A stretch of DNA of 33,000 bases, from positions 4,526,001 to 4,559,000 of the forward strand of contig OZ176056.1 in assembly GCA_964247055.1 (NCBI GenBank), read 5' to 3'. The DNA is from Paragordius varius. Taxonomy: Eukaryota > Animalia > Nematomorpha. Shown one piece after another: positions 1 to 29,853 of the stretch (position 1 is its first letter; each line of letters begins with the position of its first letter). A program made the position numbers and the translations under genes. The notes beneath the pieces were generated by a model. It ran no database searches, was not told where the DNA came from, and was given only the letters and a program-made list of their open reading frames with translations.

Positions 1-20
1 GTAAATTCATAGTAAAATAC

Positions 21-1303
21 TTGTTTCCTGTAATCCCGTAAAGCCTTCCCAAACACTAGCTAAAATTTATATTTGACAAAAATGTAATATATAATATAAT
101 ATATTTGTGGATACGTTAAACTTACATTGAAAAACTATCAAATATTATAGTATTAATTTTTAATATATATAATTAGTATTTAAGTTATTTTTGAAAATAA
201 ATTTATACCTCTCTGCAGTCTAAGTGCCGCTACAAATGTAAAAAATCACATATAACCAAAAACAGCCATAAATATTTTATATCAAATAAATTTTTTTTAT
301 AAATTGTAAAACATATTTTGGTTAATTATAAAAGTATACATTTACTTTTTTTAAGATTAGATATTATACTGTTTAATATCCAAATTCACCCCTCAACAAT
401 TTAACCTTAAACAAAATTCACCCTAAAAATGATTATGTGTTTTCAGGCTAATATAACTCATCATTGATAAGACATATATTCTTAAATTTCCTGTTTTAAA
501 AATATTCTATAGGTAATTTTTAAACTTAAAAAACACATAATTTGTTTTAGGAAAATTAAAATTGTTCCAGGGTGAATTTAAATTGTTCATGGATGAATTT
601 GAATTGTTTAAGGGTGAATAATTTGAAGTGTAAATAGTTTATCATTAATAAAACAAAATTTACATTTAAACAAATATAAAGTAAGTTATAGGCAAAAATA
701 ATTCGAATCTATTTTTAAAAAAATTACATTCTGAGATTACTGAAGTGGCTAAAGAAAATCAACATATAAAATTTAAGCGATTAAAATATAATTTTTTAGC
801 ATTGTATTATGATACATACTTTCTTCCATAATATCAGCGCCTTTAAATATAGTGATTTATTAATGTATTAAAAAATATTTAGTATATAATAAAATAATTC
901 ATACCGATTCTTATATTATCGAGAGCTGAAATAAATATTTTTTTACATATTACGCACAGTAAAAACAGAAAATATATAGACAAAACCTGAAATATATAAA
1001 CAAATTTTTTTTAAAGCCAACCATACTTTTTGAATCTTGTTTTTATAATATAACTCAATGTTTAAAATGAAGTGGGAAATAGTGATATATATAAGCAAAC
1101 ATGATTTATAGCCTTTATTAGTAATATTAAAAGTATGTTTATTTTTAAAAAAATATTTGTCTTTATAATTTTACACGTTTTGTCCGTATAATTTCAATTT
1201 TTACTGTAAATTAAATATAAATTATACGCAAAATAATATACATGACATCATAACTTGTGAGGCTAAATTGTAAAACTAACATTACCTAATTGTTCACTGC
1301 GTG
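21..1303 (-). CDS. Micro-exon gene, cluster III: 9-39 nt phase-1 exons, five of them exactly 21 nt; continues past window start
   Basis: Exons 1286-1303 (18), 1242-1262 (21), 905-925 (21), 820-840 (21), 728-748 (21), 209-229 (21), 126-134 (9), 21-59 (39). Each is flanked by AG and GT (donors gtaatg, gtatat, gtatga, gtatgt, gtaatt, gtataa, gtaagt, gtattt). Joined: xRSEQL-ASQVMMS-SLDNIRI-GADIMEE-TTSVISE-SALRLQR-VFQ-SSVWEGFTGLQET with no stops. Several introns are 64-74 nt, like the 65-nt introns of the NDRG gene. Confidence 0.72.
369..637. mobile_element. Foldback-like MITE, subfamily E copy 1 (TIRs built of ~20-nt AATTCACCCTTAAAC subrepeats)
   Basis: Left arm caaattcacccctcaacaat..aaattcaccc is inverted relative to right arm gggtgaatttaaattgttc..gggtgaataatttgaagtgtaaatag. 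Confidence 0.6.
957..1206. mobile_element. Tc1/mariner-pogo-like MITE family D copy 1 (CAGT..ACTG, TA target)
   Basis: ~50-bp imperfect TIRs (CAGTAAAAA..GACAAAAC / GTTTTGTCCGTATA..TTTTTACTG), followed by TA; left flank is CA. Confidence 0.7.
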
Positions 1304-1341
<38 letters not shown>

Positions 1342-1348
1342 TTCTTAA

Positions 1349-1815
1349 TGAATACTACACATTTATTTCAGTCCTTCGATTCAAATTGGGGTCGTTTGAT
1401 ACCCCAGGCCTGAATTAAAAAAAATCATTCAAAGATATTTGATATTACTTAATTTAAAGTAACGCCCAAAGATAAAATTTAATTACTATGACATGTGTGC
1501 ATTAGATATATTTGAAAAAATAAAAAATAAACCACTTTTTCTGTTTTCATCAATGGTAGATGAGATTTAAAAAATTAGCCTTGATTTTAACTCTGAAATT
1601 AAATAAACACGATATTTCGCAAAAATACTGTAAAAATACTGTAGAAATAGATTGATATAAAGCCTTTATTCACTAAATTTTATTTAGATATTTTAGCTTA
1701 TTTATATAATATTTATTAGGATATTTAATTGGCACCGTTTCTTTCAGTAGTTTATTACAAATACCAACTTAAGTATAATCTGGGGTATTAATATGCCCCA
1801 ATTTTAATCGAAGCA
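1349..1815 (+). mobile_element. piggyBac-like TTAA MITE family A, degenerate copy 1
   Basis: Homologous to 12511-13060. Inverted subterminal cttcgatt(c/a)aaattgggg..cccc motifs at both ends; termini eroded. Confidence 0.7.
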
Positions 1816-2177
1816 CGGTGAAATTTTTAAATAAATCTAATTTAAACCATAAAATTTACAATGCATGTGGTATTAAATCGTATTTTATTTTCTTTAACTG
1901 TTCAATCCTTATTCTCCTGAATGATCTTAGATGCATTATAGATAATTCTTGACAATTAAAAACCTATAAAAGCCACCTAAATTTAATTGTTATTGAAAAA
2001 ATTTAATATATAAAATACTTAACACTTTAAAATATTTTTGTATACATATATATATATATATATATAATAATATATTTTTGGAATTAGGTGGCTGATTTTG
2101 GAATAAAGAAAGGGTTTCATTACGATTCAGAAAATTTTTACCTTTAGTGTAAAAAATAAGATAATAGATTTATATTA

Positions 2178-4206
2178 CATTGTGCGCAAAAAAGGGGGGT
2201 AAAAAAATAAACAAATATGATTTTTATCTAGAATAATAAGAAATCCTTTGGAAAAGGAGACCCCAAAAATTTGGGTCAAAAATGCGCCCCAAAATGAAAA
2301 TATTCCATTTTTTCATCTTTGACTAGAAATAGATTTTTATCCATATTTTTAAAACTTATTGAGCAAACATGATAAAACTTATATATATTATATAAAACCT
2401 AATATATTCTTAAGAAAAATACATAAAATCATTTTAAAGTATCAATAATTTTTTTACTCCACAAAAATAGAAATTCGTAAATTTCATGACATTGTCGAAA
2501 TATATTATAAAAAAATTATTTGCAAGAACTCCATATTGTTTTTATTGTTTATGACTTATATATAACATACCAAAGAGTTGGTATATATAATAAAGGCTAT
2601 GTATCTTTTTAAGTCCCAAAAAATTATTTTTTGAAAAATTTTCGCGATTTTTGTTGCATTTTCCTCACATGCTTCTCACTGTTTCATAAATACATAAATC
2701 CACAATTTTCAAATGCGAATACTGAAAAAACCAATTAAACTTCAAGATTATGAAATTCCCATTACATTACTTTGGATAAATGTTTATATACTATTTAATC
2801 TATAGATAATAAATTTAATTAAAGACCTTTTGATATACAGAAGGCAGCATCGGAAATATAATTAGCATTTTTTGCTATTGCTATACACTATATTTAGCTT
2901 TTTAAGTAAAATTCTATTTGTCACGTATATTTTCTTCATATAATTTTAGTTACAAAATAGAATTTTCCTTGCACCAAAATTATTCTGACATTTGTAAATA
3001 ATCTACTTCCAGAATCTCTATTGCCAAATTATAAATCTAACAATTATTACAATTATATATATTTAAAAACTGATAATAAATCGATTTATTTTAATTCGAT
3101 AGAATTTTTAGCATTCTTTTACAATAAGAATATTTAATTAAGTTTCTACAAAATTTTAAATTAAAAATTTTCCGGTCTTATCAAGATATTGTCAAATACA
3201 AACTTCGTTTGCAAAAATTGCTGCAACATCTCTTCAAGTCTAACCCAACAACAACACTTAAAATACATATAAAATTTATTTATACACAATGAGTACATTA
3301 TTCAGACATAAAATGATTCCAATAGTATTCACCAACTATTGGAACTATTATAGTTTTTTTCTATATGTTTGAGCGTTTGATGGATTGTTCTCCATCCTGG
3401 TCTGTAGCCCTCCACCGGAATATAATTACCTTGCTGCTCATATTTGCTTGTAATGAACTAATTTCTCAGCAAAATACATGTTGTAATAGGTAATTATTTG
3501 TTCAGTTAATTTAATCAAATTTGTAGGGCGATGATACCTTCCGCATATATAGCAGAAAAGTTCTGTATTCAATTTGCAATTGAATTTATTAACTATGTTA
3601 TTAAATAATATATATATACTTTTATCCAAATTAAGGGTTCATAATCTTGAAGTTTTATTGGTTTTTTCAGTATTCGCATTTGAAAATTGTGGATTTATGT
3701 ATTTATGAAACAGTGAGAAGCATGTGAGGAAAATGCAACAAAAATCGCGAAAATTTTTCAAAAAATACAAATTTTTTGAGGGACTTAAAAGGATACATAA
3801 CCTTTATTATATATACCAACTCTTTGGTATGTTATATATAAGTCATAAACTTAAATAATAAAAACAATATGGAGTTCTTACAAATAATTTTTTTATAATA
3901 TATTTCGACAATGTCATAAAAATTTACGAAATTTTTGTGGAATAAAAATATTATTGATACTTTCAAATAATTTTATGTTTTTCTTAAGAATATATTAGGT
4001 TTTATATAATATATAAAAGTTTTATCATGTTTGCTCAATAAGTTTTAAAAATATGGACAAAAATCTATTTCTAGTCAAAAATGAAAAAATGGAATATTTC
4101 CATTTAGGGGCGCATTTTTGCCCCAAAATTTTTGGAGTCTCCTTTTCCAAGGGATTCCTTATTATTCTAGATGAAAATCATGTTTGTTTATTTTTTGTGC
4201 ACTGTG
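2178..4206 (-). mobile_element. Chapaev3-like (CMC superfamily) DNA transposon, internally deleted, with ~640-bp terminal inverted repeats
   Basis: 2178-~2820 is the reverse complement of ~3580-4206 over its length. Ends are CATTGTGCGCAAAAAA and TTTTTTGTGCACTGTG, with TTA on both flanks (2175-2177, 4207-4209). The centre carries a transposase remnant. The family assignment rests on remembered Chapaev3 traits (CAC..GTG ends, 3-bp TWA TSD, protein motifs). Confidence 0.75.
2830..3629 (-). pseudogene. Decayed Chapaev3-like transposase fragments
   Basis: Supplied ORF 3438..3629 gives NCKLNTELFCYICGRY...ITYYNMYFAEKL...KQI*A, matching the FCYICG..Y..YF..KL...W-A N-terminus. Frameshifted pieces follow: VPIV..NH..C..C, then VDYL..QNNFGA and MKKIY..K*N, resembling the C-terminal LDFFPENLGAVS..MEKRYQGKWN motif. 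Many stops and a large internal deletion. Confidence 0.65.
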
Positions 4207-4748
4207 TTATACAATACTAGCAATTTTAATATGAAATAATGGTAAAGTAATTTGTGGATATTTCGTTAGGGAATGTCTGAGCTTTATAATGCTAACGAGC
4301 CTGGAGACCTTAAATTTTTTTTATTAATGTTGGTTACAAATTTATGTAAAATGGGATTTTCTTGGCATTTCGTTTTATTTAATGGATCGCGCAATTTATT
4401 CATATATTGAATACTTTAGGAAAATTACATTTAGATATATTAATGCCGACTTCAGCTGAAAATACATCCCCCTAAGCTTTTTTTAAAAAAAACAGAGTCC
4501 ACATTAAATAAGGTACAATTAATTTGAAAGATCTTCGTAAGTGATGTCGATTTTATACAACAAGTATGTGATGGATATAATATTGTAACATTAAAATTTA
4601 TTAATATTTAATATAAATTTAATTTTTTAAGCAGTGTATTTTGTGATTGTAAAGAATTTAGAATAAGTGATCACATGATAAATTTAATATTAGTTTATTA
4701 GTATCTATCTTATTATAAAATTTTATACAGCAAAATTGATATCATATA

Positions 4749-5006
4749 CAGTTAAAATGTAAAAACATAAAGACAAATATATTGTTTAAAAAGACCGCTA
4801 TAGATCTTTATGCAATATATAACTGATTGTTATAATTGCATAGTATGAAAACATGTAAAATGGCAACACAATCAATTATATATTTTTAAATTGTAATTAG
4901 TGTATATAGGAAAAATTAAGGTTTAAATGAGTTGGTTTTTGTCTGTTAAATAATATTTGTCTTTATAATTATTTACGCTTTATCCGTATAATTTCAATTT
5001 TGACTG
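4749..5006. mobile_element. MITE family D copy 2
   Basis: TA-CAGTTAAAATG..TAAAGACAAATAT and ATATTTGTCTTTATA..TTTTGACTG-TA; TA on both flanks. Confidence 0.7.
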
Positions 5007-5019
5007 TAAATGCATATAC

Positions 5020-5726
5020 TTTGCTGTCGAGGTAGATTTTCATTGACGGACACATCATCAATGTTAGTGTCACCTATTAATTGATTTTATGAATTATTTT
5101 TTTTCTAAAAAAAGCAATTTAAGCAACTTAATATTTTTAGTATTATACTACTGCTGCTTTCGGTATCAAATCTATTTTCTTCAGAGTTCGGTTCACTGTT
5201 AACTGGATCTTCTTCAACTGAATTGTTAAATAGATTAAATGCAATTTTAATTAAAATTATAGCTGTTTTATAGTTTTAATGAAATTATTATTTTTTATGT
5301 AGTAATATATTTTTAGATTAAGAATTTAAATTTTTTGACTAAATATAAATTAGATAAAGAGATAGCCTAATTAACAGAAAGATATATATAATACTTTTTA
5401 ATTATTTTTTAACCCTTCTTAACTACACTTAAAATAATTTTAAACTTTAAAATATTTATTTAAACAAAATGTATCATTTATAATAAAAATATTTACAGAT
5501 TAATATTAATATTATACTTTTCCCCACAATTAACATATAATTAATAAATTATACTCTGTAGTTCAGATCCATTTTCATCCGAAAATAAATCATCATCAAG
5601 GTTGTCTTCTACATATTGCACAATAATTATTTAATTTTTTTTATTTTTAATTAAATTTTTGTTATGGAAAAAAACCTTCATCACCCTCAATTCCAATCTC
5701 ATCTTCAAAGTCATCAGGTGAATTTT
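5020..5726 (-). CDS. Micro-exon gene, cluster II: four phase-1 exons encoding an acidic low-complexity segment
   Basis: Exons 5676-5726 (51; weak gaag acceptor, alternative phase-2 start 5731), 5555-5608 (54), 5149-5217 (69), 5020-5073 (54); introns 67, 337 and 75 nt. Joined: xNSPDDFEDEIGIEGDEEDNLDDDLFSDENGSELQIEEDPVNSEPNSEENRFDTESSSSDTNIDDVSVNENLPRQQ. The Asp/Glu/Ser/Asn bias holds in one frame across all four exons. Confidence 0.8.
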
Positions 5727-5882
5727 CTTCGCTTTTTGATTAAATATAATTTATTATGATTACTGAATATATATATATAATATATATATAAATATTTGTT
5801 TTCGTGCATTAATAAACTATATATTTTGTAAGAAGTTTATTTTTTAAACTTAATATATATGGTTTTTTTTAAAGATTGGTTT

Positions 5883-6095
5883 CAAAGGCGCAAAGGGAAA
5901 GGGGACCTGATGCAACGGGCTTGCCATAGTTTAAGGGGGGCCGGATTCTAAATTTTTTTATTTAATTTCAAAAAAATAGTTATTAAAAAATTATTATTTT
6001 TAAAAAATCATTCATTTATGAGTGGTCATGACCAAGGTTGGGGACAAGAAGAGGCCATCACGGACTGGGCGTCAGAAATGCAAGTTACGTCTCTG
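5883..6095. mobile_element. hAT-like MITE (213 bp)
   Basis: Imperfect 11-bp TIR (CAAAGGCGCAA versus reverse complement CAGAGACGTAA, 8/11). GC-rich ends around an AT core; 8-bp flanks ATTGGTTT and ATTGAATT (6/8), compatible with a decayed 8-bp TSD. Confidence 0.5.
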
Positions 6096-6313
6096 ATTGA
6101 ATTGGTTAAGATCGCTTGTACATATTTATTATTTTTCGTTCTTTGGTAAAAGTGTTAAAATTAGTTAGCTATTTATAGTGTTTTCACTATAACTTGCGAA
6201 AAAACTAAGATAAATCAAAATTTCTTACTATATATTCAAGATTTGTTGAAAGATTTAATTTTAACAAATTTTCACTCGGCTTACACAGATTGGTTATGAA
6301 ATTATATAATAAA

Positions 6314-6345
6314 CTAGCGTAAATCTCGTGCTGCTACGAAGCCCG
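6314..6345 (-). mobile_element. Possible Helitron 3-prime end (imperfect hairpin plus CTAG|T)
   Basis: Minus strand reads ..TCGTAGCAGCACGAGATTTACG-CTAG-T: an imperfect GC-rich hairpin about 8 nt before CTAG. It borders a relatively GC-rich non-coding block (~6320-7700) whose other end I could not define. Confidence 0.35.
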
Positions 6346-7741
6346 AGGAAGTTTCGGACTTCTGGGGGGGGGGGGGGGGTCTATTTGAAAAAAGAGACAA
6401 TAAAATAATCCATATATGTGGATTGCAAAACATTATTTAATAGCTATGATCTCATGGGATTTTCAAAACGGTGCATTCATACTAATATATTGTTTACTAT
6501 GTTAAGTCCCCATATTGACCTTAACGGAAAAAACCGCTATACTATAATATTTTTATGGGTAATATTTAAAGCCTTTAATTGAATTCCTATGGCTTTTAAT
6601 TTTTTTGAAAATTAGCTCCAAATTGTATGGCGTCTCAGTTTTAAACCGGTAGGCTACCCACAGGCCTTTATAGAAAAAGCGCTAAGTTATATTTTTTGTA
6701 TAGGGAAATATTTGGAATCATCTTTGACACCATCGTATCATGGAAAAAATACCTCAACACTAAATAATCGTTATGTATTTTTAGGGCATAAAGGCCCCAG
6801 ATTAACGGCTAATAAAAAAAGGCTGGCCTTAATTTTTACCTAGTTACGGGTAATATTTCGAACTTTAAATGAATATGGCATAAGTTTTAAATTAGTTGCA
6901 AAACAACGCCATTTCTATATAGTGGCACAGTTTTTGGCGAGCTTCTTACCCAGAGGCAGGTATATAATAGTGTCGGGCAAAATTTGTTTTTATAAGTTCT
7001 TGGAAATATTGCTACAAAACCAAAAAATTGTTCTATGGCGGCGAATTTTCAGAGCGTAAAACTTTCCTTAGCGACTCATTTAATAACCCCCTGTAGTAAA
7101 ATATTTGTTTTTTAAGATGTAATATTAGGCCCTGATTGAACTCACATAATCTCATAAGTTTTCTGAAATTTAGCTCCAAAGGCATGCTGTATCGATATAG
7201 TGACTTTTTACGCGGATAGCCCCCTACTCAGAGCCTATTTAACCGCTATTTAAAAAATCAGCTCGACTAAAATTTTTGCCTTTTAACAGGGAATACCTGA
7301 AATCCTTATTGAATTTTAACAGTCTCATACTTTGGGCGAAAAATAGTTTCAAAAAATTATTTTTGTGGACTTGATTTTTTTGAAAAAAAAATGGCATTTT
7401 ACGGTGGGAGCGGGTAAAAAGAGAGCCTAAATTTAAAAAGCGAGCCGACTATGTTCGGCGCAATCAAATAAGTAAAAAAAATCACATTTGAAATCGAATG
7501 GTCCAACACGTTTTCCGGAAAATTGTTTCAAAATAACCGTTTCTTACGCGGAGTGGGCCCGAACCCGAGGCCTAATTCAAAAAAGGGCGAAGCTATTGTC
7601 GGGGCATTCATTAATGATTATATTTTTTCGGTATGACTTGAATGGGTTTACCGGTTTTTCGGAAACAGATCACAAAGCCACCGCTTTCCATTTTTATAAA
7701 TATATAGATTACAAATTAGATACCCATCATTTTTTAATATT

Positions 7742-7833
7742 TTATGGCATAATCCAACTAACTCCATAAAAAATCCAATAAATCCCGCCAATGAATACAA
7801 GCGAAAGCAACACAATATATGTGAAACTCAACT
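7742..7833 (-). CDS. Candidate terminal exon encoding a hydrophobic transmembrane or GPI-signal-like tail
   Basis: Phase-1 acceptor (ttaaaag|AG at 7834/7833) reads KLSFTYIVLLSLVFIGGIYWIFYGVSWIMP* directly after the STTTAPP exon. Requires a 41-nt intron (7834-7874). Confidence 0.5.
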
Positions 7834-7874
7834 CTTTTAACGATATAAATTTATGTTTTAAAATAAAATATAAC

Positions 7875-9664
7875 TTGGTGGTGCTGTTGTCGTGGATTGT
7901 AGGTTTGATTCTGGTGTCACATCATCTGTAAGGTTAGTATGATAAAAATTAAGTTTAATCAAAATAGAATTATCTTAAAAATAAGATGAAAAATAGAGAT
8001 CAATAAAACTATAATTCACTGAATTATTATTTGTATTCCTCTGTATGAATCGTTATTGATATATACATTCCTTAACAAAATTTTGATAAATAACTCGCTA
8101 AAGTGCATCAACTCATCAATGTTGTTTCCTTAAATATTTAATAAATCAAACTAGCAATGTTTATGGTCTTAAAATAAACTTAATTAAAACTCTGACTATT
8201 TAAAATCTATAACCTGGTTGAGTAATCCCTTCTGTTTGGACAGCTAGTTTTTTATATTTATAGGTGTGAATTAGTCTTCGAAAATTATTAAATTGAAAAC
8301 AATACAATTTGTATGGGTTAATCATGTCGCGATTATATATTATAGCTGCTTAAAATTAGTTTTGTTTTTATGTTTTAAAAACGATCATTTTATTATAATA
8401 CAAGGAATATAAATCTTAATCTAAGACTGTAAAATAAGTTTTATACATATACTATTTGCACTTCAAGAGTGTCCTTAAACACTTCATGTTGGTCCTTGTA
8501 CATTTGATGGTCCTTGAACATTTTAAGTTTGTCCTTGAACACTTCAAGTTGGTCCTTTAAAGTTTTAAATATTAATTTAATCATAATTTTTGCATTTATT
8601 TTTTAATTTATTAATTTTTTATCTAATTTACTTTATTTATAATTATAGATTCAAAAATAAAAATTTTGTTCATAAACTACTTTTTTGTTTCAAAATAATT
8701 TTTTTCCATTTTACAAAATTATTAACTTTTAAATGTTTTCCATGAAAAATTGTAAAACCCGCATGTATTTTTTAATTTCGTGAATCTTATAAATATCCAA
8801 AATAATTTTGAGAAATTAAAAAAAGATAACGGTTTATCAATGATTAAAAGTTGATATTGATTTAAAATTTATGTTAAATAATTGAAATAGGTCAAAAACG
8901 ATAAAATAGATGAATGATATACGATTTGATAGGTCAAAAACTAAACAAAAAAAGGACCAACTTGAATTGTCCAAGGACAAACTTGAAATGTTCAAGGACA
9001 TTCTTGAAGTGCAAATGGTATATATATATTAAAAAATATAGACTTTGAGGTTGGACATTTTGAGCCATTGCATTTATTCCAGAAGGTCCGGCGACGCCAG
9101 CTAATTGTGATGTAGCACTTGAACTTGCCCCAATTATTACTCCTAGGTTTTTGCGTTTTGTAATTTTTTAATTTGAATATAAAATAAAATTTATAAATTA
9201 AGACAGAATAATAAAATTTTACCACCAATTGCTCCTTAATTACATAAAAAATAAAATAAGTATTCAAACAATGTAGTTGTCATAAATGATAAATTTGAAC
9301 TAAATATATACCTACTCCCCCAACTATATTTCATATTATTTAAATGTGATTGAAACCTGTCAATGGTATAACTCCAATCGGAACAATAGATTTGTCAGTG
9401 TTATCTTGAAAAAAAAAATAAATACTATTTTTAAAAAAATTTGCAAAAGGTTGATGAGAAGCTCTGAAAATTTTATACATATAAGTTTTAATGATATTGT
9501 TTCTTTGCAATTTATAAAATAAGAATCCAACAATAGTTTACCAATATATGAAATAAAAAAAATAATTTGAATGTAAATACCCGATTTTAGCCCAGATTTA
9601 ATTTTGGGAATATTGCGAAACTCTGAAGTCCCATTGTTTTTCAATATATGTTGATTTAAAATTT
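7875..9664 (-). CDS. Micro-exon gene, cluster I: phase-1 exons encoding a Gly-rich and Ser/Thr/Pro-rich linker or stalk
   Basis: Exons 9581-9664 (84), 9357-9404 (48), 9312-9323 (12), 9223-9234 (12), 9044-9142 (99), 8214-8243 (30), 8099-8128 (30, GC donor), 7875-7925 (51). Joined: xILNQHILKNNGTSEFRNIPKIKSGLKSDNTDKSIVPIGVIPLTVGGVGAIGGVIIGASSSATSQLAGVAGPSGINAMAQNVQPQTVQTEGITQPGNNIDELMHFNDVTPESNLQSTTTAPP, no stops. Confidence 0.75.
8452..9018. mobile_element. Foldback-like MITE, subfamily F (567 bp; TIRs with tandem 21-nt GTCCTTGAACACTTCAAGTTG units; TA flanks)
   Basis: TA-CTATTTGCACTTCAAGAGTGTCCTT.. at left and ..AAGGACATTCTTGAAGTGCAAATGG-TA at right. About four subrepeat units at left and three inverted units at right. 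Confidence 0.75.
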
Positions 9665-9939
9665 CTAAATGCAGAAAAATTTTAATAAATTTGATAAAAA
9701 AAATATTTTAAAAAATAATGGTGACACAGGCACACGACACATTTTTAAACGCCCTCTTATATAATTTCTAATTAATTAAAAATATTTTAAATAATTTTTA
9801 GGTTTAGGTTAAAAGATATTCGTACTAATGATAATGATATTTTCATAAAATAAATTGTTTTCATAATAAATCAATAAATTTAAATTTTAGCTTAGCTGTT
9901 TTTAGCCACATATAAGGTTATTAACTTATTTTACATTAA

Positions 9940-11333
9940 TGTGACCAGATAGGCTGTATTCAGTACAGTACTGGGTTTTTAGAAAAAAATTGCGCCTGTA
10001 CTGCGCCCTTTTTTGTACTGCTTTTTGAAATTAAAAAAATTTAATTTTTTATAAATATATATTAAGTACTTTTATTTATTCAACAAAATTATTTTAGAAT
10101 ATTGAATATAAAATCCTCTATAAAATTAACCCCACAATTTATAAAGCAATGGTTTATAAAAAACTAAGATTTGTAATTGATTAATATTATTTCTGTTCAT
10201 AAATCGTCGACTCCACCGTAAGATTCAGGCTAATAGCACTTTCAATCAGGGTTTCCTCAAAAAGAAGTGCCTCAAAATTTAAAATTAACAAAGTTTTTGA
10301 TATTTTAATATATTTTTGATTAGTTAGAAAGTTCATTTTTTGTTATAATTATCAAACGGAAAATTATATAAAAAATTGTATTCCCGTAACATATTATTTA
10401 AAATTTATTATATATGGCATATGATTTCGAAACCTATTTTTTTTTATTAAAAGATTAAGAGTTTTTTAGATTTTCGGTGAGTAGGATATTTCTAATTTAT
10501 TCCTAATATTTATTTATATTAGTTTTCTGATTTTTTGCATTAACAAATTCGAGATATTTTTTGTTGAAGCGTACTTGAACCTTTTTTGAACATGAGGGAA
10601 ACGGTATATCGCTTATATAAAAATCCTTTTTATAAATAATTCGATGATGTTGAATATTACTATGGGCTGAGAATTTTAATTATAAGTTTTGGCGAATTTT
10701 TGAAAAAAGAATACTGATTGAGAAATTAGCATTACCGAATTATATATATATTTTATATTATCTCAACCGTTATCGTTTCCATTATGTTCAAAATAGTCCG
10801 TAGTTTGCTTCAACAAAATTTGCTAAATAATAAATTTTCGAGTATGCATTTTTTAAAAAAATATAGTTGATATCAAAATTTAGCATATATTTAAAATTTT
10901 TGTACAATGTCGAAATTTTGCGTTATTTTAAGAGAACAGTCCATTTTAAAGAGCCAAAAAATTTGGAACTTTCAGAGCCAACATCTAAAAATTTAATATT
11001 TTTAAAGATATTGTACTTTTTATATGTAGTTTATGTTATATTTTAGTGATATTTTTTGAAATAAAGATTTAACACTCACCAAAAAATATATTTGAGAAAT
11101 TGCGCTCTTTTTTGCAATTTTGTACGGAGCACTTACCACCGTGTAAATAACTTTCTTTAACAACTAGTAAAAGTTAAAACCAAAAGCACCATGATAATTC
11201 TGTTATTTTCCTATCAGAATATATATATTTCATCAGGATATTTTGTGGAAGCTGTGCAATATACCACACCGATTGTGTGTATACAGGCAATTTTAATTTT
11301 GTACTGCGTTAGAGATCAAATTATCTGGTCACA
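9940..11333. mobile_element. 1.4-kb non-autonomous TIR element with TGT..ACA termini
   Basis: TGTGACCAGATA at 9940 and TATCTGGTCACA ending at 11333, with further inverted cagtaca and aaaattgc(g)cctgta motifs. Flanks TTAA and TTAT. Superfamily not determined. Confidence 0.5.
10868..11230 (+). repeat. Dispersed repeat H copy 1
   Basis: Shares ggaactttcagagccaacatctaa..aaaaccaaaagcaccatgataa..ctatcagaatatatat with 15575-15910. Confidence 0.7.
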
Positions 11334-11476
11334 TTATTTTACATCCAAAACAAGTTTTATTAATAAATAATAAGTTATTATATTAAAAAAGTAAAAATCA
11401 TCTTTACTTTAAAATTACAACTATTTCTTATACAGGCTTTTACCTTAAATTATATTAATTACATATTAGCCCACAC

Positions 11477-12076
11477 TCAAAATATTTGAGTATCTTTCTT
11501 CACCTTGAACTAAAGCAAATATTTGTATAATTTTCGAAACAAGTTGTGATAGGTTAAGGGGAGGGGGTGCAAATGACTTGGCTTATTTATTGATTTTTAT
11601 ATTTTAAAGCCAACCTCAAAATTGATTTGATATTCTATCATTATGAATCAACTAAAATTGACAACCATCTTATTTTTGGTGCTTATGGTTTTTTGGAAAT
11701 CGCAAAACCAAGTAAATTTAATTAAGATAATTTAAAGATACTTTTATAACAAGAGTTAAACTGTAATAAAAATGATGTTAAAACAAAGACATTTTTTATG
11801 AGAAATGATTATAGTTTCGAAAATTTTTATTTCCTGATTAAGGTAATATTAAAAAATTTGGACTAAAGTCTCTTTTTTTCTTCATATATTTAAGGTAAGA
11901 ACTTATATATCAGGACTTGTGAAAGCTTTGACACTCGCCTACCCATATTTTATATTTCATATAAAATTTCATTTTTGCTCAATATTTAATATTCAAAATT
12001 TCTAAAACAAAAATATGTAACAAATCTATATTTAAAACCGAATATAACTTACAGTCGATAGAACACACTTTAAAAT
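11477..12076 (-). CDS. Two tentative linking micro-exons (12053-12076, 24 nt; 11477-11509, 33 nt)
   Basis: 12053-12076 has a ttttag acceptor and gtaagt donor (xFKVCSID in phase 1; ILKCVLST in phase 0 is also open). 11477-11509 has a tttgctttag acceptor and a weak gtgtgg donor (xQGEERYSNIL). Both are phase-compatible with flanking exons but short enough to arise by chance. Confidence 0.35.
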
Positions 12077-12510
12077 CTAAAATCATAATTGTTTTAGGGA
12101 TCCATTTATAACATACGGATTTCAATTACTTTTTATAAAAAGCAAACGATTTTAAAATTTTTATCTATGGGATAATAATTTATCATCTGACTTATTTTTC
12201 ATATTCCTCTAGTAGATGACTAGAGTATTAAATATAATTTATGCTGTTCTAAAAAACAACTATTTATATAAGAAACTATAGAAAATTTAAAATGAGAAAT
12301 GCGTATAGCTCGAATTTATAAAATTTTGGGGTTTTGCTAGACATGATAAAATCATTTAACGATTATTCATAAACAATAAACGATAAAATGATATATTTTT
12401 AAAATTTTGACTTCTTTCGACCATGCATTTTCTATATCTGTAATTAAGGATGTAAAAAAGTCCGTAAACATTTGAAAGCTTTTATATTTATGTATTAAAA
12501 ATTTATTTAA

Positions 12511-13060
12511 CATTTGGATACAACACATTCATTTTAGTCCTTCGATTCAAATTGGGGTAGTTGGATACCTCAGGCATTCTTTAAAAAATATGGAAGGAAT
12601 TGAAACCATAGCAAAATTTTGTACTTATATAACATTAATAAACCGGAATATATAAAAAAATTTTTTCAAAAATACTTGATATTATTTATTTTAAGCTAAA
12701 ACCCAAAGGTGAAAATTTAAACCTGACATATGTTGAAAAATAATACAAAATAAACCACTTTTTTTATTTATATCAGTGTTAGATATGATTTAAATAAAAA
12801 ATTAGCTTTAATTATACTTTGAAAAATAAATGAACACGATATTTTGCAAAAAGTTTGCAAAATAAAAATGGCGTCCAAGTAGTTTGAGTGGAACTTTTTT
12901 TTCAAAACGAAATTTTATTAAATATTTTAGCCTATTTATATAATTTTTATTGGGATAGAGGCATAAATTAAAATTAGGGCCCTTTCTTTCAGTAGTTTTT
13001 TTAAAATTTTAAATTTTATTTGGTCTGGGGTATATAGATACCCCAAATTGAATCGAAGTG
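12511..13060 (+). mobile_element. piggyBac-like TTAA MITE family A, full-length copy 2 (550 bp)
   Basis: TTAA on both sides (12507-12510, 13061-13064). Ends are CATTTGGATAC and GAATCGAAGTG, with a subterminal GGGGTA-N6-TACC(C/T)C palindrome at each end. No coding capacity. Confidence 0.8.
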
Positions 13061-13070
13061 TTAATCATTA

Positions 13071-14746
13071 CACATGGCGCAAAAGAGAGGGTTAGTTTTT
13101 TTAACTAAACGAGATAGCTTATGACCAGCGAATTTATTTGCCGCAAAATTTGACGACTAGTTATTTAAATATTAAGAGAAATTCAAAATTGGGCAAAAAG
13201 TGAAAATATTAAGAATAATTCAAATAATGATACTTGAGATATTATGGTTTGTTATTATTTTAGGAGATTTTTTTTATAATGGCCTAAAATCATATAGTTA
13301 GGGTTTGTATAAAATCCCAGTTCAAAACATGGCCTTAAAAGACAAAAAAAATATTTTTTTAATTATTTCCTAGCTAAACTCACTATTAATATCTCAATTA
13401 ATATTTTATTGAGAAGTTATATATCAAAATAAAACTAAAAAAATGTTATTTATTTTTTCATGTTTATGTCATCTGGTTTATGAGTATATAACAAATTTAT
13501 ACTGTATATTATTTTGAATCTTGCATGCGTGGAAATTATGTAGTGTATAATTATGCAAAAAGGATTTAAAGGTAGTTTAACACTTCGATTCAAATGGGGT
13601 ATCTAAATACCCCAGACTAAATTTAAGTTAGGATTTTTCAAAAACTACCAAAGGAAACGGTCCCAATTTAAATTTATGCTTCTATCCTAAAAAAAATTAT
13701 ATAAATATGCCAAAATATGTAAATAACATATTGTTTTGAAAAAAAAGTTTCTGTCAAAATACTTCTACGCCATTTTTATTTTACAAAATTTTTGCAAAAT
13801 ATCGTTTTTGCTTAATTTTAATGGTAAAATTAAAGCTTATTTTTTTAAATTACATCTAGCATTGTAGAAATAGAAAAAGCGGTTTATTTTGTATTATTTT
13901 TTAATTTTACCATTTCATATATATCGCGTTGATGAAATTTTCACCTTTCGGTTTTGGCCTAAAATAAGTAATATCAAGTATTTTTGAATTAAAATTTTTA
14001 TATATTTCGGTTTTTTAATTTAAGTGCAAAATTTTGCCATGGTTTCGATTCCTATATTCTAGATTGAATACATGCCTGGGGTATTCAACTACCCCAACTT
14101 GATTCGAAGGATTAAAATGAATGCATTGTATCCAAGTGTTAATACCAACCAACAATCCTTACAAATCCCTGTAACAAGTTTGTATTAACTCAAACTAATA
14201 TTTTAACTGGGTTATGTACGGATATTTGGTTGATTTTTCACTATTTGCTATTTTGTATTATTTATATATTTAATAATTCCAGCTCATGTAAGAATCTAAA
14301 AAACGGTTAATTTTTTATAGTCATAACCAGATGACAAAAAATGAAAAAATAAAAAATATTTTTTAGTTTATTTTGATATAAAAGTTTTTATTACTGAATA
14401 AAATATGAATGTTAATATTATAGTGAGTTTTATATTCTATTTCATAAAATTTTTTAGTCTTTTAAGTTAGTTAAAAAACGCCATCTTTTGACCTGAAATT
14501 TATACAAACCCTATCTATATGATTTTAGTCAATTAATATATTGCGAGTATCTCTTAAAATGATAATAAACCATAATATCGCAACTTTTTTCACAATCCTT
14601 AATTTTCACCTTTTGCCCGATTTGGATTTTCTCTCAAAATTTCAAAAACTAGGTCGTAAAAAAATTTTTTACGCCAAATGAATTTGGTCATAAGCTATCT
14701 CAAGAAAAAAAATTATTTTGTTAAAAATATTTTTGCACACAGTGTG
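13071..14746. mobile_element. Second Chapaev3-like non-autonomous element with ~460-bp TIRs, interrupted by a piggyBac-like MITE
   Basis: 13071-~13533 is inverted relative to ~14278-14746 (shared gagatagcttatgacca, gggcaaaa(a/g)gtgaaaa, gtcatctggtt). Ends are CACATGGCGCAAAAA and TTTTGCACACAGTGTG, with TTA on both flanks (13068-13070, 14747-14749). The first ~20 nt resemble the 2178 element end. Confidence 0.7.
13581..14138 (-). mobile_element. piggyBac-like TTAA MITE family A, full-length copy 3 (558 bp), inverted, nested in the 13071-14746 element
   Basis: TTAA on both sides (13577-13580, 14139-14142); reverse complement of copy 2 along its length. Confidence 0.8.
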
Positions 14747-14874
14747 TTATGGTATTTATATATTTAAACTTTATTAGCCATGATTTCGCAAAGTTAATGT
14801 TTGATGAATGACTTTATGCGTGATTGCACACTAACATATTTTAATTAGATTACAGGAGCTTCTTAAATATTTAC

Positions 14875-15287
14875 ACTCCATTTGAATATTCAATGCCAAA
14901 TCTGGATCATTATATTTATATGGTAAAATCCAAGATTCAAAAACGGTTTTACGGGATTTTTCGGAATTATCTTATATGTTTTGTTCTGGTAAAAATTTAT
15001 AGCGTTTGCTTTAGCTAAGATGATTAATGCCATAATACTAAAAATAACTCTTTTCGGTTTTTTGTATTTATTTCCATTATATGGCGCTTGATTCCCAATT
15101 CCATAATGGACTCTAACTAAAAATGAATCTTTAGGGATACAAAAATTCCAAATTTTAAACACTATGTATATATTTAGTAAATGAGACGAAATCGATTAAC
15201 GATACACATAGCATTGGAAAGCGTGGTGTTTGGTACGTCGAGGAATATGGTGTGGAAGAATATTACGAAGTATATTAAAATTATATC
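14875..15287 (-). CDS. Probable upstream exons of the micro-exon gene; globular-looking segment of unknown family
   Basis: Phase-1 exon 14875-14970 (xNSEKSRKTVFESWILPYKYNDPDLALNIQME, donor gtaaat). A 68-nt intron separates it from exon 15039-15161 (xFKIWNFCIPKDSFLVRVHYGIGNQAPYNGNKYKKPKRVIF; alternative start 15116). A further exon starts at 15287 with ambiguous frame and donor (15267, 15237 or 15206). Overlaps supplied ORF 14890..15162. Confidence 0.55.
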
Positions 15288-15574
15288 CTATTTAAAAGGT
15301 AATTACAATAAAAATTAAAACCATCGATAATATATTATTAAAATTAATTGGTTTAAAACGATTTGCATAGTCAAAAATAACGCATATAAGTCATAGTGTA
15401 TCATTTGGTTGTAAAAGTTTTTACTTTTTAAAATTTTTTTAAAAATATTACATTGCCACTCAAAAATTAAACTTTTTACAAAAAATTTTTAAAGAGCAGC
15501 AAGTGCCTGAGGAACCACCTAGGACACCCTTGCTCTAAATCAAATAACCCTTTTCACGCAAAAAACTTTTTTTG

Positions 15575-15910
15575 ATGTCAAAAATCAGCATATATTTCAA
15601 ATTTTATCGCCGCGCAATCTCGTAATTTTTGCGGTTAAGAGAAATGGCCCATTTAAGAAGGGCGAAAAAAATTGGGACATTCAGAGCCCACATCTAATAA
15701 ATATTAATAAAAACATTGATTAACTTTTTATATGCAGTTTATATGTTTTAGTAGTTTTTGAAATGTAGCATTTTCACCAAAAAAAAATTATTTAAGAAAA
15801 TGTGCCTTATATGGACGACACCTAAAATGCTATAATTTTATATTTCATTCTTAAGCCTTAAAACCAAAAGCACCATGATAACCCTAATATTCTTTTCTAT
15901 CAGAATATAT
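15575..15910 (+). repeat. Dispersed repeat H copy 2
   Basis: Colinear with 10868-11230 (tgat(a/g)tcaaaa..agcatatattt, cagagcccacatctaa, aaaaccaaaagcaccatgataa). Confidence 0.7.
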
Positions 15911-17655
15911 ATATTTTATTATATTTTTTCTCTATTTTAGACGCGTGTAATCCTTTTTAAAATTTTTACTAAAGTCACAAAACTTAACACAGATTAAATA
16001 ACTATTTATATATAGGTAAAATGATCACACATAATTACCAAGATTATTAAATATCAAATTTAACTGAAGCGTAATGAAGAATTATGAATGGAACAGGAGT
16101 CGAATGTTTATTTTTTGTAAATTATAAAAATTGAACTATATAAAAAAGTTTAATCTCAAATAAGGGCGCTTTTGCAGGATTACTTCCTATCCATAAATAT
16201 TTATTTATCACTTTAGGATTCACGTGGTAAGATTTATTATTTCGTTCAATTTAATATACATATATAATTGTTTTTCTTATATGTTTAGTCTATCACGGTT
16301 AATTTAACAAGCGATTTAAGAAAATTCAAACTAGTTTTCAAATAAATTTAAATGAATAGTTGTTACTAAATAAATTTTTGTTAAATTTACTATTTTGGTT
16401 ACCGAGCAATTTCAAATTCGATTTTAAATAAAAAGTATGTATTCTTTAGCTTTTTGGACGCATGATTCAATTTTTTGTAAAGCTCAAAAAAATCCTCATC
16501 TCAATCGAAAAATAAATGTATAATAATTTTATATATCAGCTGCTCTTGACCTGGTTTCAAGCTATCTCAATTTTAATTTTATAATTAACCACAAACAGAA
16601 TAGCTTTTTAATAGTTAAGACCTATGTTTGCTGAAAAATTTAACCCAAAAAACCTTCAAAACAGCTGATAATATGCAAGTTTAAGTTCTGGGGTAATCCG
16701 AAAAAAAAATAAAAAGGTAATGTTTATGTTTTACCTTATGATTCTAGGATAAAGCCAAAATTTTTTCGATTATAATGAAAATTCTACCTATTTTCTTGCT
16801 AACAGCTAAATATATTAGATTTTAGCTACTATGAAACCAATATATTATTTACAAGAAAACTCTATATAAATGATGTGGTTGTAAGGGGTAAACTTAATTG
16901 AATTCGAGAAATAATAAAAACTATATACATTTATTCGATGTATGTTGTATTTTTAGTTGTTTTATTTAAAGTACCAATATTAAATTTATTTTATGACTTA
17001 CTTAATAATAAAGTTGAGCTATGTGTGGGTAGCTAAAACTATAAACGATATATATTAATAAAATCATAGTTTAAAATGGTTTAATAAAAATTAGAAAACG
17101 TGCTTTATTTAATACAACAATAATACTTTAAGTAATCCATTTACCAATATCCAGGTGAATTGTTAATAGATCTAAAATAAATTTTTAACCTTACATATCG
17201 CAAAATGAACCAAATATTTTTTATTTTTATACAAACGAGTTATATTAAATCTTATTTCATTAAAATTTAATGGTAATAAAAGATATAATTATGAGAGTTT
17301 ATAGTTTAATTTTTAAAAAAATAACTAAAATTTAATGTTTCGTGATACAGATATTATTTATTTGTAAATATTTGTAATTAATTTAAATTAAATATGCCAA
17401 TTGTCTTATACACATATAAATAATAAATATCAAATTAAACATACCATAATAGATTGCATAAAAACTATAAATTAAAAATATGGATATATATTAAGATTTA
17501 AATATGTTTAAAACTAGAGACACCACCATTTCCGATATTACTTTAAAAAATATCAATTTATGCATATAGGGACATTTGCTTTTTATATAAATAAATTTAC
17601 TATAGTATGCTGTAGACTAAAAATTATTTAAAGAGTATTGTACAACATCATATTA

Positions 17656-17950
17656 CAGTAAAAAATAAAATGAATATAAAGACAAAACGTAAAAACTCAA
17701 AAAGTTTATATATTTTTTTAAAAAAGGCATCCATATTTTTATAAACCTAACTATTTCAAATATAACTTATTGTTTAAGGCGAAGAATAAAGCTAATTGGA
17801 TAAATACTCAATTAAATGACATTTCAATCAAAATCAATTAGGTAATATACTCAAAAAATAAAAGGCCAAAAATATGAATTATTTTGTAAAAAATATTATA
17901 TTAATCCATTAATTTTACGTTTTGTCTTTATAAAGATTTAATTTTCACTG
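17656..17950. mobile_element. MITE family D copy 3, ~185 nt downstream of the NDRG stop
   Basis: TA-CAGTAAAAAATAAAATGAATATAAAGACAAAACGTAAAA and TTTTACGTTTTGTCTTTATA..TTCACTG-TA. Confidence 0.7.
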
Positions 17951-18134
17951 TAATAGACATAGTTTCATAAAAATTATCAGCGAAGAATTTGACATAATAT
18001 ATATACACATAACATATAAAGGAAGTTAGATAAAAATGGTGTACAAATAGTATGTATATATCTTATGACTAATTTTCTATTGTTTTTTCGCTTTGGGAAA
18101 GCAAGAAAAACAAGGATTAAAAGTTTCAAATTAT

Positions 18135-20491: not shown

Positions 20492-20539
<48 letters not shown>

Positions 20540-28307: not shown

Positions 28308-28665
28308 ATGTGCCCGTGTCCCCTTTTTAGGTATAAAATGCCCCTTCTAAAAATAAATACCTGTTTTATTTTCTTGAAATGACTTAATTTCCGAAATATC
28401 TAAAAAAATTAACAATAAACCGATAGTTTAATAAATACAACTTGCCACTGGTTTTGTATATTCGATCCTCGCAAGTTTGGGATTCGAATCTAAAAATGTT
28501 AAAAAATTAAAACTGTATATTTATATTTGCTATTTAAATCTTTGAAACATTTCTCAACAAAAATTTTAAATAATTATTGTGCTATATTGATTATTTTAAT
28601 AGCGAAAATACGGAATTTTAAAATCGATATCGGCACCGCATCAAAATTTTCAATATAATTTATAA
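27881..28665 (+). repeat. Direct repeat G copy 1 (~785 bp, internal (TA)n)
   Basis: Aligns by eye with 29120-29853 at an offset of ~1240 bp, including (TA)n followed by gtcatgtgccc(g/a)tgtcccctttt. Confidence 0.85.
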
Positions 28666-29500: not shown

Positions 29501-29853
29501 CATGTGCCCATGTCCCCTTTTTCAGGTATAAAATATCCCTTCTAAAAATAAATACCTGTTTTATTTTCTGGAAATGATTCAATTTCCGAAATATCTAAAG
29601 AATTAACAATCAACCGATAGTTAAATAAATACAACTTGCCACTGGTTTTGTATGTTCCATCCTCACAAGTTTGGGATTTGAACCTAAAAATGTTGATAAA
29701 TTAAAAATTTAAATATATATCCGCAAAGCTTTAAATGTTTAACAAAAGCCTAAAATAATTATTGTGCTACATTAACTGTTTCAAAATTCGATAGAAATAC
29801 GGCTGTCAAAATCGTTTTCGGCATCGCATCAAATTTTTTAATATAATCTAAAA
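29120..29853 (+). repeat. Direct repeat G copy 2 (~735 bp)
   Basis: As above; long shared stretches such as aagaggtaat(g/a)aaatgttaaaattaaatttccaaatga and caacttgccactggttttgtat. Confidence 0.85.

Follow-up and report, generated by a model that had tools for sequence, protein, structure and literature searches.

Alternatively spliced micro-exons of 3–27 nt, such as those of the neuronal programme, are isolated within ordinary, conserved, well-expressed animal genes. They are recognised from RNA evidence and from their conservation, and they are not visible without spliced reads. The micro-exon genes (MEGs) of Schistosoma contain many short exons in one phase, with lengths divisible by three (3n), separated by transposon-bearing introns that range from less than 100 nt to several kilobases; MEGs are missed by ORF finders and automatic annotation, and the skipping of their exons is frame-neutral in principle (PMC4350168; bioRxiv 10.1101/2023.06.21.545858). 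They are described as confined to platyhelminths and as always bearing a signal peptide (PMC4350168). Most of the MEG coding region consists of very small exons, of which those of 15 bp are the commonest, and the products, with a maximum length of 189 residues (bioRxiv 10.1101/2023.06.21.545858), are expressed in parasite glands or epithelia. All-1:1 phase is also found in ordinary genes such as tropoelastin, in which each exon border splits a codon 1:1 to give cassette exons, and which encodes a low-complexity product and grows by exon duplication (bioRxiv 10.1101/2024.12.03.626628).

The locus described here lies in a window of 33,000 nt from Paragordius varius, the whole stretch of DNA that was analysed. 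Downstream of an NDRG gene, the minus strand carries a row of short GC-rich islands with coding signals. They probably belong to a genuine gene, seen here in part, whose mini-exons are symmetric and in phase 1. The row shares with Schistosoma MEGs the short 3n exons in one phase, the mixture of short and long transposon-bearing introns, and the concealment from ORF finders and automatic annotation. It shares with tropoelastin the 1:1 borders, the low-complexity predicted product and the growth by exon duplication. The likeness to tropoelastin is one of architecture only; the product here would be Ser/Thr/Pro/Gln-rich and then acidic, without a lysine-rich cross-linking module. Neuronal-type micro-exons are similarly very short, of 3n length and flanked by strong splice signals, but they are isolated, whereas here a whole row is predicted from the DNA sequence. 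The preliminary description of the locus held that its architecture defines MEGs; since all-1:1 phase occurs in ordinary genes, the architecture alone does not do so, and there is no support for placing the row in the MEG family.

The NDRG gene occupies positions 18135–24617 of the minus strand and serves as the local reference. Its eleven exons that were read join into a 313-aa open frame, which matches Pfam Ndr at 5e-8 and 6e-5, and the terminal exon 18259–18135 ends exactly with the stop codon. The host genome is animal-like and very AT-rich, with 23% GC, and the NDRG motifs are insect-like. The donors gtataa, gttatt and gtattt, which those of the row were said to resemble, are present in the NDRG gene, and both the donors and the intron sizes of the row agree with it.

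About 20 segments bounded by AG and GT, of 3n length and in phase 1, had been proposed, and 18–19 of the 20 were found as placed on the minus strand. The exception is the second 30-nt segment. Its sole candidate (8483–8512, minus strand) was rejected as an exon, with an in-frame TGA in phase 1 and a position inside an arm of a MITE inverted repeat (8442–8558 / 8951–9028). The segments join without stops only if it is omitted. Two of the proposed introns, at 9356–9324 and 1285–1263, are just 33 and 23 nt long, compared with a verified 65 nt for the shortest NDRG intron here. Overall, some six of the 20 segments are doubtful or have to be rejected. The resulting chain comprises at least 241 codons and is open at both ends.

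The density of phase-1, 3n, open AG..GT segments, proposed as a test, does not set the row apart, as it is the same whichever phase or strand is counted and is matched by shuffled sequence. Enrichment is likewise absent among micro-sized candidates filtered by splice scores or GC contrast. When open 3n AG..GT segments with GC ≥ 0.33 are chained, minus phase 1 yields 1344 nt, against 1179 and 1272 nt in the other minus phases and 936–1164 nt on the plus strand. That the observed density equals the null density favours an explanation that we consider fairly unlikely, in which there is no functional gene. On this view the larger islands would be remnants of a decaying gene, or else conserved non-coding GC islands, while the micro-exons would be chance AG...GT segments chosen by eye where such segments are plentiful. 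The same explanation gains from the two impossible introns, the stop-bearing segment, an 84-nt segment without coding signal, the absence of expression in the available transcriptomes, and the failure to find either a start or a homologue.

Against this explanation, the chosen set departs from randomness by three independent measures, namely codon usage, codon-position GC periodicity and island bracketing, each significant relative to matched nulls. Codon usage was scored with a model trained only on the NDRG coding sequence, of just 313 codons, versus NDRG introns. The phase-1 frame ranks first of six in 6/8 larger exons, and seven of the eight score 0.85–1.05 bits per codon, compared with 0.15–1.04 for NDRG exons left out one at a time. 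Relative to 756 GC-matched open AG..GT segments, the exons of 99, 51, 51, 54, 69, 54 and 39 nt fall in the top 2.6–6.6% (Fisher combined p = 1.9e-4). The GC content at the three codon positions is 0.57/0.41/0.24 in the larger exons and 0.56/0.40/0.24 in the whole codons of nine micro-exons. For the latter, GC1-GC3 is 0.32, a value reached in 0/20,000 resamples of a null with -0.04 ± 0.08 (p < 5e-5), and the micro-exon cluster at 1–1303 is periodic by itself (p = 0.007). As the preliminary description had observed, GC islands outside transposons are bracketed by AG and GT in minus phase 1, which holds for 8/9 of them, compared with 15/57 elsewhere (p = 1.6e-4). Exon GC is 0.33–0.58, whereas the 40-nt flanks have 0.07–0.30. 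The locus is single-copy, with a depth in DNA run X1 of ~550–650 in exon-bearing bins and 1e4–1e6 in transposon bins. The frame is open across 18 segments with a coherent composition, which also counts against a non-gene origin. However, a recently dead gene would look identical, so that explanation survives mainly in the form of a pseudogene. A multi-exon coding region hidden from ORF finders is, on codon usage, GC periodicity and island bracketing, very probable.

The larger exons, all on the minus strand and, except for the last one described, in phase 1-1, carry most of this signal. The 99-nt exon at 9044–9142 is strongly supported, and its peptide is Gly/Ala/Ser-rich, then Gln/Pro-rich. 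It has a GC content of 0.44 (flanks 0.17–0.20), a codon log-odds score of +27.3, which is the highest of the six frames and within the top 6.6% of the null, and codon-position GC of 0.59/0.56/0.19. The 24 codons that precede its sole in-frame ATG are periodic too (0.54/0.67/0.17, p = 0.007), indicating that the reading frame enters the exon from upstream. The supported 51-nt exon at 7875–7925 encodes a Ser/Thr/Pro-rich peptide and is open in the phase-1 frame alone. Its 0.86 bits per codon lie in the top 6.5% of the null, with one plus-strand frame slightly higher, and its GC of 0.45 contrasts with 0.20 and 0.10 in the flanks. The next four exons are strongly supported, encode acidic peptides and score best in the phase-1 frame: 51 nt at 5676–5726 (codon score 15.6, top 4.5% of the null; codon-position GC 0.69/0.25/0.19; single-copy depth in run X1), 54 nt at 5555–5608 (17.8, top 2.6%), 69 nt at 5149–5217 (22.0, top 4.1%; also Ser-rich), and, after an intron of 75 nt, 54 nt at 5020–5073 (17.0, top 4.1%). 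The last of these has acceptor and donor scores of 6.7 and 6.8, but was itself in the splice-site training set. The exons 5555–5608 and 5073–5020 are paralogues, with 29/54 bases identical in register (shuffle mean 14.4, p < 2e-4). Of all exons in the span that were left out of the splice-site training, the 39-nt exon at 21–59, in phase 1, has the highest splice scores (acceptor 9.0, donor 7.5); its codon score of 11.7 is the best of its frames and in the top 4.5% of the null. It is either internal, with the donor gtattt, or, if this donor is not used, the terminal coding exon, which would then end at a TGA at 9–7. Its donor is ~20 nt from the window edge, where the 3′ end is cut off.

The smaller segments, also on the minus strand, are more heterogeneous. 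The 30-nt exon at 8214–8243 (phase 1-1) is moderately supported, with GC of 0.47 against 0.23 and 0.15 in its flanks, periodic GC (0.7/0.5/0.2), and acceptor and donor scores of 5.6 and 3.6. Equally moderate is the support for a 12-nt candidate at 9223–9234, too short for a test alone, which has GC of 0.50 (flanks 0.15 and 0.07; periodic, 0.75/0.75/0) and introns of 77 and 80 nt on either side, and for three 21-nt candidates. The first of the three, at 905–925 (acceptor 6.7, donor 6.6), is at this stringency one of only four such segments in the 33 kb, with none on the plus strand; phase 1 is its sole open frame and its depth is single-copy. The second, at 820–840, follows a 64-nt intron and has a donor of 7.4, an acceptor of 3.4 and a codon score of 7.8 in its best frame, phase 1. 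The third, at 209–229 (acceptor 7.3, donor 6.2), has GC of 0.57 compared with 0.25 and 0.07 in the flanks. The 21-nt candidates at 728–748 (acceptor 0.4, donor 3.4) and 1242–1262 (site scores 4.5 and 4.3) are weak and show no GC periodicity. The latter is 23 nt from a doubtful 18-nt candidate at 1286–1303, which requires this distance as an intron and adjoins a (TA)n run at 1304–1349. Similarly doubtful is a 12-nt candidate at 9312–9323 (donor 7.4, GC 0.58), which requires the 33-nt intron after the segment 9404–9357. That weakly supported 48-nt segment (9357–9404), with a hydrophobic peptide, has weak sites (acceptor 2.4, donor 1.3) and 0.09 bits per codon, equalled or exceeded by 71% of null segments; its GC island is bracketed in phase 1 only. 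The 9-nt segment at 126–134 has AG and GT as its sole support, and with 11% GC it is not a GC island.

The 84-nt segment at 9581–9664, previously taken as the first exon, is unsupported as coding (codon score -6.6, flat GC of 0.30/0.30/0.30); its phase-1 frame has no ATG, and an ATG at 9633 meets a stop before the donor. None of the candidates that precede the 99-nt exon has an in-frame ATG, no start exon was found, and scanning 9405–18100 for exons with an ATG and a phase-1 end gave nothing convincing. The 32-aa peptide of the 99-nt exon had no match in 1.84 billion representatives, in a word-indexed search or in Pfam. Expression was not detected in three transcriptomes with the same species label (contigs of 19–30 Mb), in which ~0.00 of the sampled words were shared.

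We regard it as very unlikely that the locus is a true MEG-like gene, with a product that is secreted or anchored at the surface and with many symmetric micro-exons whose combinatorial skipping yields a set of variants, as it does in Schistosoma. Such a gene would agree with the symmetric, phase-1 form of all exons and with the alternation of long transposon-filled introns with short ones. Ten of the 19 segments are ≤36 nt, and joining any two exons in order never gives a stop at the junction, in line with the preliminary description's view that in-frame skipping is possible. A hydrophobic stretch near the 5′ end of the chain (Kyte-Doolittle up to 2.1), if the weak 48-, 12- and 12-nt segments are real, and the absence of a detectable homologue, as in orphan secreted families, point the same way. 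However, exons of ≤36 nt make up just 25% of the coding length and 75% lies in exons of 39–99 nt, most of it in those of 48–99 nt, several micro-exons are doubtful, and the chain exceeds the longest MEG protein. Neither skipping nor expression was observed, no signal-peptide exon was found at the locus, and no homology to any MEG family was found with the peptide of the 99-nt exon, the only one searched. The apparent restriction of MEGs to platyhelminths, and the signal peptide that all of them have, also argue against this assignment.

NDRG proteins typically have disordered, phosphorylatable C-terminal tails. The exons could be alternative 3′ coding exons of the NDRG gene, with the last internal donor (18637) skipping the terminal exon 18259–18135 and joining the phase-1 series, an unlikely arrangement in our view. 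It would fit the position of the series, on the same strand, immediately downstream and with no intervening gene, and also a frame that enters the 99-nt exon from upstream although a start exon was not found in the intervening 8.5 kb; the product would be Ser/Thr-rich, acidic and of low complexity, as suits such a tail. Donor 18637 shares phase 1 with all candidate exons, but this match is expected by chance in one-third of cases. The NDRG gene already ends in its own stop-bearing exon with a plausible 3′ UTR, the candidate exons begin only 8.5 kb further on, past many transposons, and the GC island at ~9713–9764, which carries a TATA-like motif, may be a promoter of its own. The hydrophobic stretch, if real, would be foreign to NDRG, and we know of no NDRG tail spread over ~18 exons and 18 kb. 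If the exons did belong to NDRG, there would be an isoform with a long disordered Ser/Thr-rich, acidic C-terminal tail.

Our preferred reading, held tentatively, is that the islands are coding exons of one minus-strand transcription unit, part of which lies inside the span, and which is most likely an independent gene outside current RNA coverage. Its well-supported core consists of the exons of 99, 30, 51, 51, 54, 69 and 54 nt, ~136 codons, and the complete set may include some of the exons of ≤21 nt. The core product is probably a disordered, low-complexity polypeptide, which is in order Gly/Ala/Ser-rich, Ser/Thr/Gln/Pro-rich and strongly acidic. A 159-aa join that also takes in the 48-nt segment and two of 12 nt has a computed pI of 4.05. 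If real, these three segments would add a hydrophobic, glycine-rich stretch and a possible membrane anchor. The common phase 1 and 3n lengths are the footprint that tandem duplication of symmetric exons would be expected to leave, and the 54-nt paralogues show an exon duplication. With this shared phase and these lengths, any loss, gain or skipping of an exon would be frame-neutral.

The preliminary description had proposed that the minus strand of window positions 21-9664 carries about 20 small exons, each preceded by AG, followed by GT, divisible by three in length and open in phase 1. Eighteen of the 20 listed segments are exactly as claimed. The claim that they join without stops holds for the chain that omits the second 30-nt segment. 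The sole possible candidate for that segment, 8512-8483, contains an in-frame TGA, lies inside the arm of a MITE and was rejected. The 9-nt segment at 134-126, listed as a GC-enriched island, has a GC content of 11%, and two of the proposed introns are only 33 and 23 nt long. In the null count that had been suggested, open, GC-enriched AG..GT segments with lengths divisible by three were about equally dense in the three phases, on the two strands and in a Markov shuffle. Open AG..GT segments of such lengths showed no enrichment even after splice-site scores or GC contrast were added. Because the null density equals that observed, the bare pattern is not evidence for exons, by the yardstick of the preliminary description itself.

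The chosen set of segments is far from random. A codon log-odds model, trained solely on the coding sequence of the neighboring NDRG-family gene versus the introns of that gene, placed the predicted frame ahead of the other five in six of the eight larger exons. For seven exons (99, 51, 51, 54, 69, 54, and 39 nt), the model gives 0.85-1.05 bits per codon, on par with the NDRG exons in leave-one-out, and among 756 GC-matched null segments this score puts them in the top 2.6-6.6%. The codon usage combined over these seven exons gives a Fisher p = 1.9e-4. Coding sequences in AT-rich genomes have low GC at the third codon position. The codon-position GC of the larger exons in the predicted frame is 0.57/0.41/0.24, and that of the nine micro-exons, counted over whole inner codons only, is 0.56/0.40/0.24. 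The difference between the first and third positions in the micro-exon set is 0.32, versus -0.04 +/- 0.08 in phase-1 null segments, and was reached by none of 20,000 resamples. The cluster at 1-1303 taken alone gives p = 0.007 in the codon-position GC test.

The surroundings of the segments are also distinctive. Minus-strand phase-1 bracketing is found at eight of nine GC islands outside transposons, versus 15 of 57 elsewhere (p = 1.6e-4). The GC content of the exons is 0.33-0.58, compared with 0.07-0.30 in their 40-nt flanks, and the bins bearing exons are single-copy. The two 54-nt exons are identical at 29 of 54 positions in register (p < 2e-4), indicating exon duplication. Acceptor and donor scores are both at least 6 in the untrained segments 925-905, 229-209, and 59-21; one more segment with both scores this high lies in the remaining 23 kb on this strand, and the plus strand contains none.

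Seven minus-strand segments were graded as strong candidates: 9142-9044, 7925-7875, 5726-5676, 5608-5555, 5217-5149, 5073-5020, and 59-21. Segments 8243-8214, 9234-9223, 925-905, 840-820, and 229-209 were graded moderate, and 9404-9357, 1262-1242, and 748-728 weak. The remaining segments are doubtful or rejected: 9323-9312 and 1303-1286, for which the introns are impossible; 9664-9581 (84 nt), which has a codon score of -6.6, flat GC, and no in-frame ATG; and 134-126 together with 8512-8483. Certainty is lowest for the smallest segments.

The exons are absent from the available RNA: three transcriptomes labeled as the same species share ~0.00 of the words sampled from 1-9700 and from the exon-dense part at 5020-5726. 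The sole placement in read mapping on 1-5800 was a spurious 23-nt match. DNA contigs from two related species match parts of 4972-5674 at ~90-97% identity, the visible matches being mostly transposon copies. In both relatives the share of words present is higher in 5020-5726, which was not counted as conservation because a low-copy repeat at ~5433-5626 may be its source. In a single contig of the alternative haplotype from the same-species DNA run, the 67-nt intron between two acidic exons contains all three listed differences (5619, 5666, and 5672), which is anecdotal. Homology searches with the 32-residue peptide of the 99-nt exon gave no match in phmmer against 1.84 billion representatives, no Pfam family, and, in the ESM Atlas, nothing above noise (best score 0.50). 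A word-indexed search with the 77-residue open stretch around this exon gave no match. With so short and low-complexity a query, these blanks are weak evidence. In an exact-product look-up of two open reading frames from the window, neither was on record. It is rather unlikely that the segments are a relic or a product of chance: the silence of the transcriptomes and the ordinary density of the bare pattern are consistent with such an origin, and the codon usage and codon-position GC of the set speak for coding sequence.

The nearest gene on the same strand encodes an NDRG-family protein and lies at 24617-18135, with 8.5 kb separating it from the claimed span. Eleven exons were read and joined into an open frame of 313 codons ending in a TAA stop, which forms the final three bases of the terminal exon. 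Pfam matches to single exons, the best at 5e-8 and 6e-5, confirm the Ndr domain. The location of the N-terminal exons upstream of 24617 was not found. The donors of this gene are gtaagc, gtttat, gtaaat, gtattt, gttatt, gtataa, gtaaat, gtaatt, gtatgt, and gtaagt, and its introns range from 65 to 1323 nt, so that what had been stated about NDRG donors and short introns is correct. The GC content of the window is 16-33% per kilobase, with a mean of ~23%, and its introns look like those of animals. Neither Rfam nor a tRNA scan gave a match in the window.

The ends of the candidate gene bear on its relation to NDRG. None of the candidate exons upstream of the 99-nt exon contains an in-frame ATG. 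The 24 codons preceding the lone in-frame ATG of the 99-nt exon are strongly periodic (GC 0.54/0.67/0.17, p = 0.007), which rules out this ATG as the translation start; therefore, the reading frame enters the 99-nt exon from upstream, in phase 1. No exon that starts with ATG, ends in phase 1 and has credible signals emerged when 9405-18100 was scanned. The ATG at 9633, a possible start, is in frame with the chain solely via the gtttcg donor, which is very weak (score below 3); ahead of the better donor, at 9581, it meets a stop. The last internal donor of NDRG, at 18637, is in phase 1, as are all the downstream mini-exons. Thus, an NDRG isoform that reads on into the downstream exons, as a 3' extension of that gene, is a live rival; the compatible donor phase, the frame entering from upstream, and the lack of a convincing start exon in the scanned interval favor it, and it is nonetheless rated as rather unlikely. 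A sharp GC island at 9713-9764, just upstream of the exon cluster, carries a TATATAAG motif ~20 nt upstream of a short ATG-initiated open reading frame, and may be the core promoter or 5' untranslated region of an independent gene. Exon 59-21, at the 3' end, either continues by splicing past the window edge or reads into a TGA at 9-7. The segments are tentatively read as part of an independent gene, for which the chance is put at a little below even.

Transposon sequence fills the gap between NDRG and the claimed span, as well as much of the span itself. A foldback-type element of ~2 kb at 2202-4196 has a unique center of ~750 nt between two ~600-nt arms that are inverted copies of each other, with blocks of 89-99% complementarity; its depth is 20-60 times that of unique sequence, indicating that it is multi-copy in the genome. 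The GC-richer element (33% GC) at ~5850-7860 carries a long run of C near 6365-6380 and, on either strand, numerous short open frames, and is probably a decayed transposon within the 2.1-kb intron that separates two 51-nt exons. The MITE-like element at 8442-9028, from which the spurious 30-nt segment derives, has inverted arms built from ~21-nt units (GTCCTTGAAC-like) that read as a repetitive 'KDQ..E' peptide. Judged by depth in the same-species DNA run, extremely abundant MITE families occupy ~389-650, 1142-1212, and 1304-1813, with further copies near 12,520-12,590, 13,020-13,160, 13,580-13,620, 14,040-14,170, and 31,390-31,520. In that run, transposon and MITE sequence has a depth of 1e4-1e6, versus ~600 for unique sequence, with word depth in the abundant MITE families reaching ~5e5-9e5. 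These families are abundant in both related species too, and one of them has a conserved core reading 'PNLKRRT-MNV'.

Elsewhere in the window, the minus-strand repeats 28421-28489 and 29615-29683 each form a 69-nt phase-open AG...GT segment, with near-identical peptides, a clear example of transposons creating exon-like segments in this genome. Low-depth contigs from one of the related species (organism C) match the window at 100% identity over 151-212 nt, at 431-581, 595-806, and 4656-4806; other contigs from that species differ from the window by 5-10%. The identical contigs could reflect cross-contamination, very recent transposon sharing, or introgression.

The joined phase-1 chain is open over 241 codons and at both ends. 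Its robust core is rich in Gly, Ala, and Ser, then in Ser, Thr, Gln, and Pro, and then strongly acidic across four exons, a composition from which intrinsic disorder is predicted. Including the weak 48-nt segment (9404-9357) and the two 12-nt segments (9323-9312 and 9234-9223) adds a glycine-rich hydrophobic stretch (Kyte-Doolittle up to 2.1), with no Met upstream, that the chain otherwise lacks. Because of this dependence, a membrane anchor is a possibility, not a finding.

Exons that all share the 1:1 phase are a general route by which repetitive or disordered proteins grow through exon duplication. In tropoelastin this architecture is the rule and permits cassette splicing (bioRxiv 10.1101/2024.12.03.626628). 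The candidate exons resemble it in that all have lengths divisible by three and are open in the phase-1 frame. Elastin alternates hydrophobic and lysine-rich cross-linking exons, whereas the candidate has no Lys-Ala modules; its joined peptide is rich in Ser, Thr, Pro, and Gln and then acidic, with a pI of 4.05 computed on a 159-residue join to which the 48-nt segment and both 12-nt segments belong.

The segments had been interpreted as a hidden micro-exon gene (MEG) in which skipping of any subset of exons would keep the frame. No stop arises at the junction of any ordered exon pair, and therefore the skipping claim holds arithmetically. Likeness to MEGs also includes the symmetry and the common phase 1 of all 19 segments. 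MEGs encode small secreted proteins with exon-skipping variants and are apparently restricted to platyhelminths (PMC4350168; bioRxiv 10.1101/2023.06.21.545858); very small symmetric exons make up most of their coding region and every product has a signal peptide (PMC4350168). Their exons are 3-81 bp long, most commonly 15 bp, and their products have at most 189 residues (bioRxiv 10.1101/2023.06.21.545858). In contrast, the ten of 19 candidate segments with lengths of up to 36 nt total just 25% of 735 nt, with exons of up to 81 nt holding ~75% of the coding length; the scan of 9405-18100 located neither a signal-peptide exon nor the gene's 5' end; and the 241-codon chain, open at both ends, exceeds any MEG product. 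With a chain of this length and an exon peptide that has no match among 1.84 billion representatives, the candidate does not fit the description of a small secreted product from a known MEG family of platyhelminths. Therefore, the candidate resembles MEGs and tropoelastin in architecture and is not classifiable as a MEG. A hidden MEG analog with combinatorial isoforms is unsupported. A genuinely MEG-like, variant-generating gene is very improbable. There is equally little expectation of an orphan gene outside flatworms that independently evolved this architecture, with ~15-19 symmetric phase-1 mini- and micro-exons arising by duplication, an acidic membrane-anchored or secreted product, and combinatorial skipping into many isoforms.

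That the micro-exons carry a coding signal as a set is a neat result. The gene may be one that annotation lacks. If the segments are transcribed, they form a protein-coding gene or a long alternative NDRG tail of a kind that would escape ORF-based and many automatic annotators in a genome with 23% GC, and codon-position GC periodicity can single out exons as short as 12-21 nt, as a set. Transcription would also add another disordered protein built from duplicated symmetric phase-1 exons, alongside MEGs and tropoelastin. For the locus to bear on whether MEG-like variation systems exist beyond platyhelminths, both isoform ladders and a secretion signal would have to turn up.
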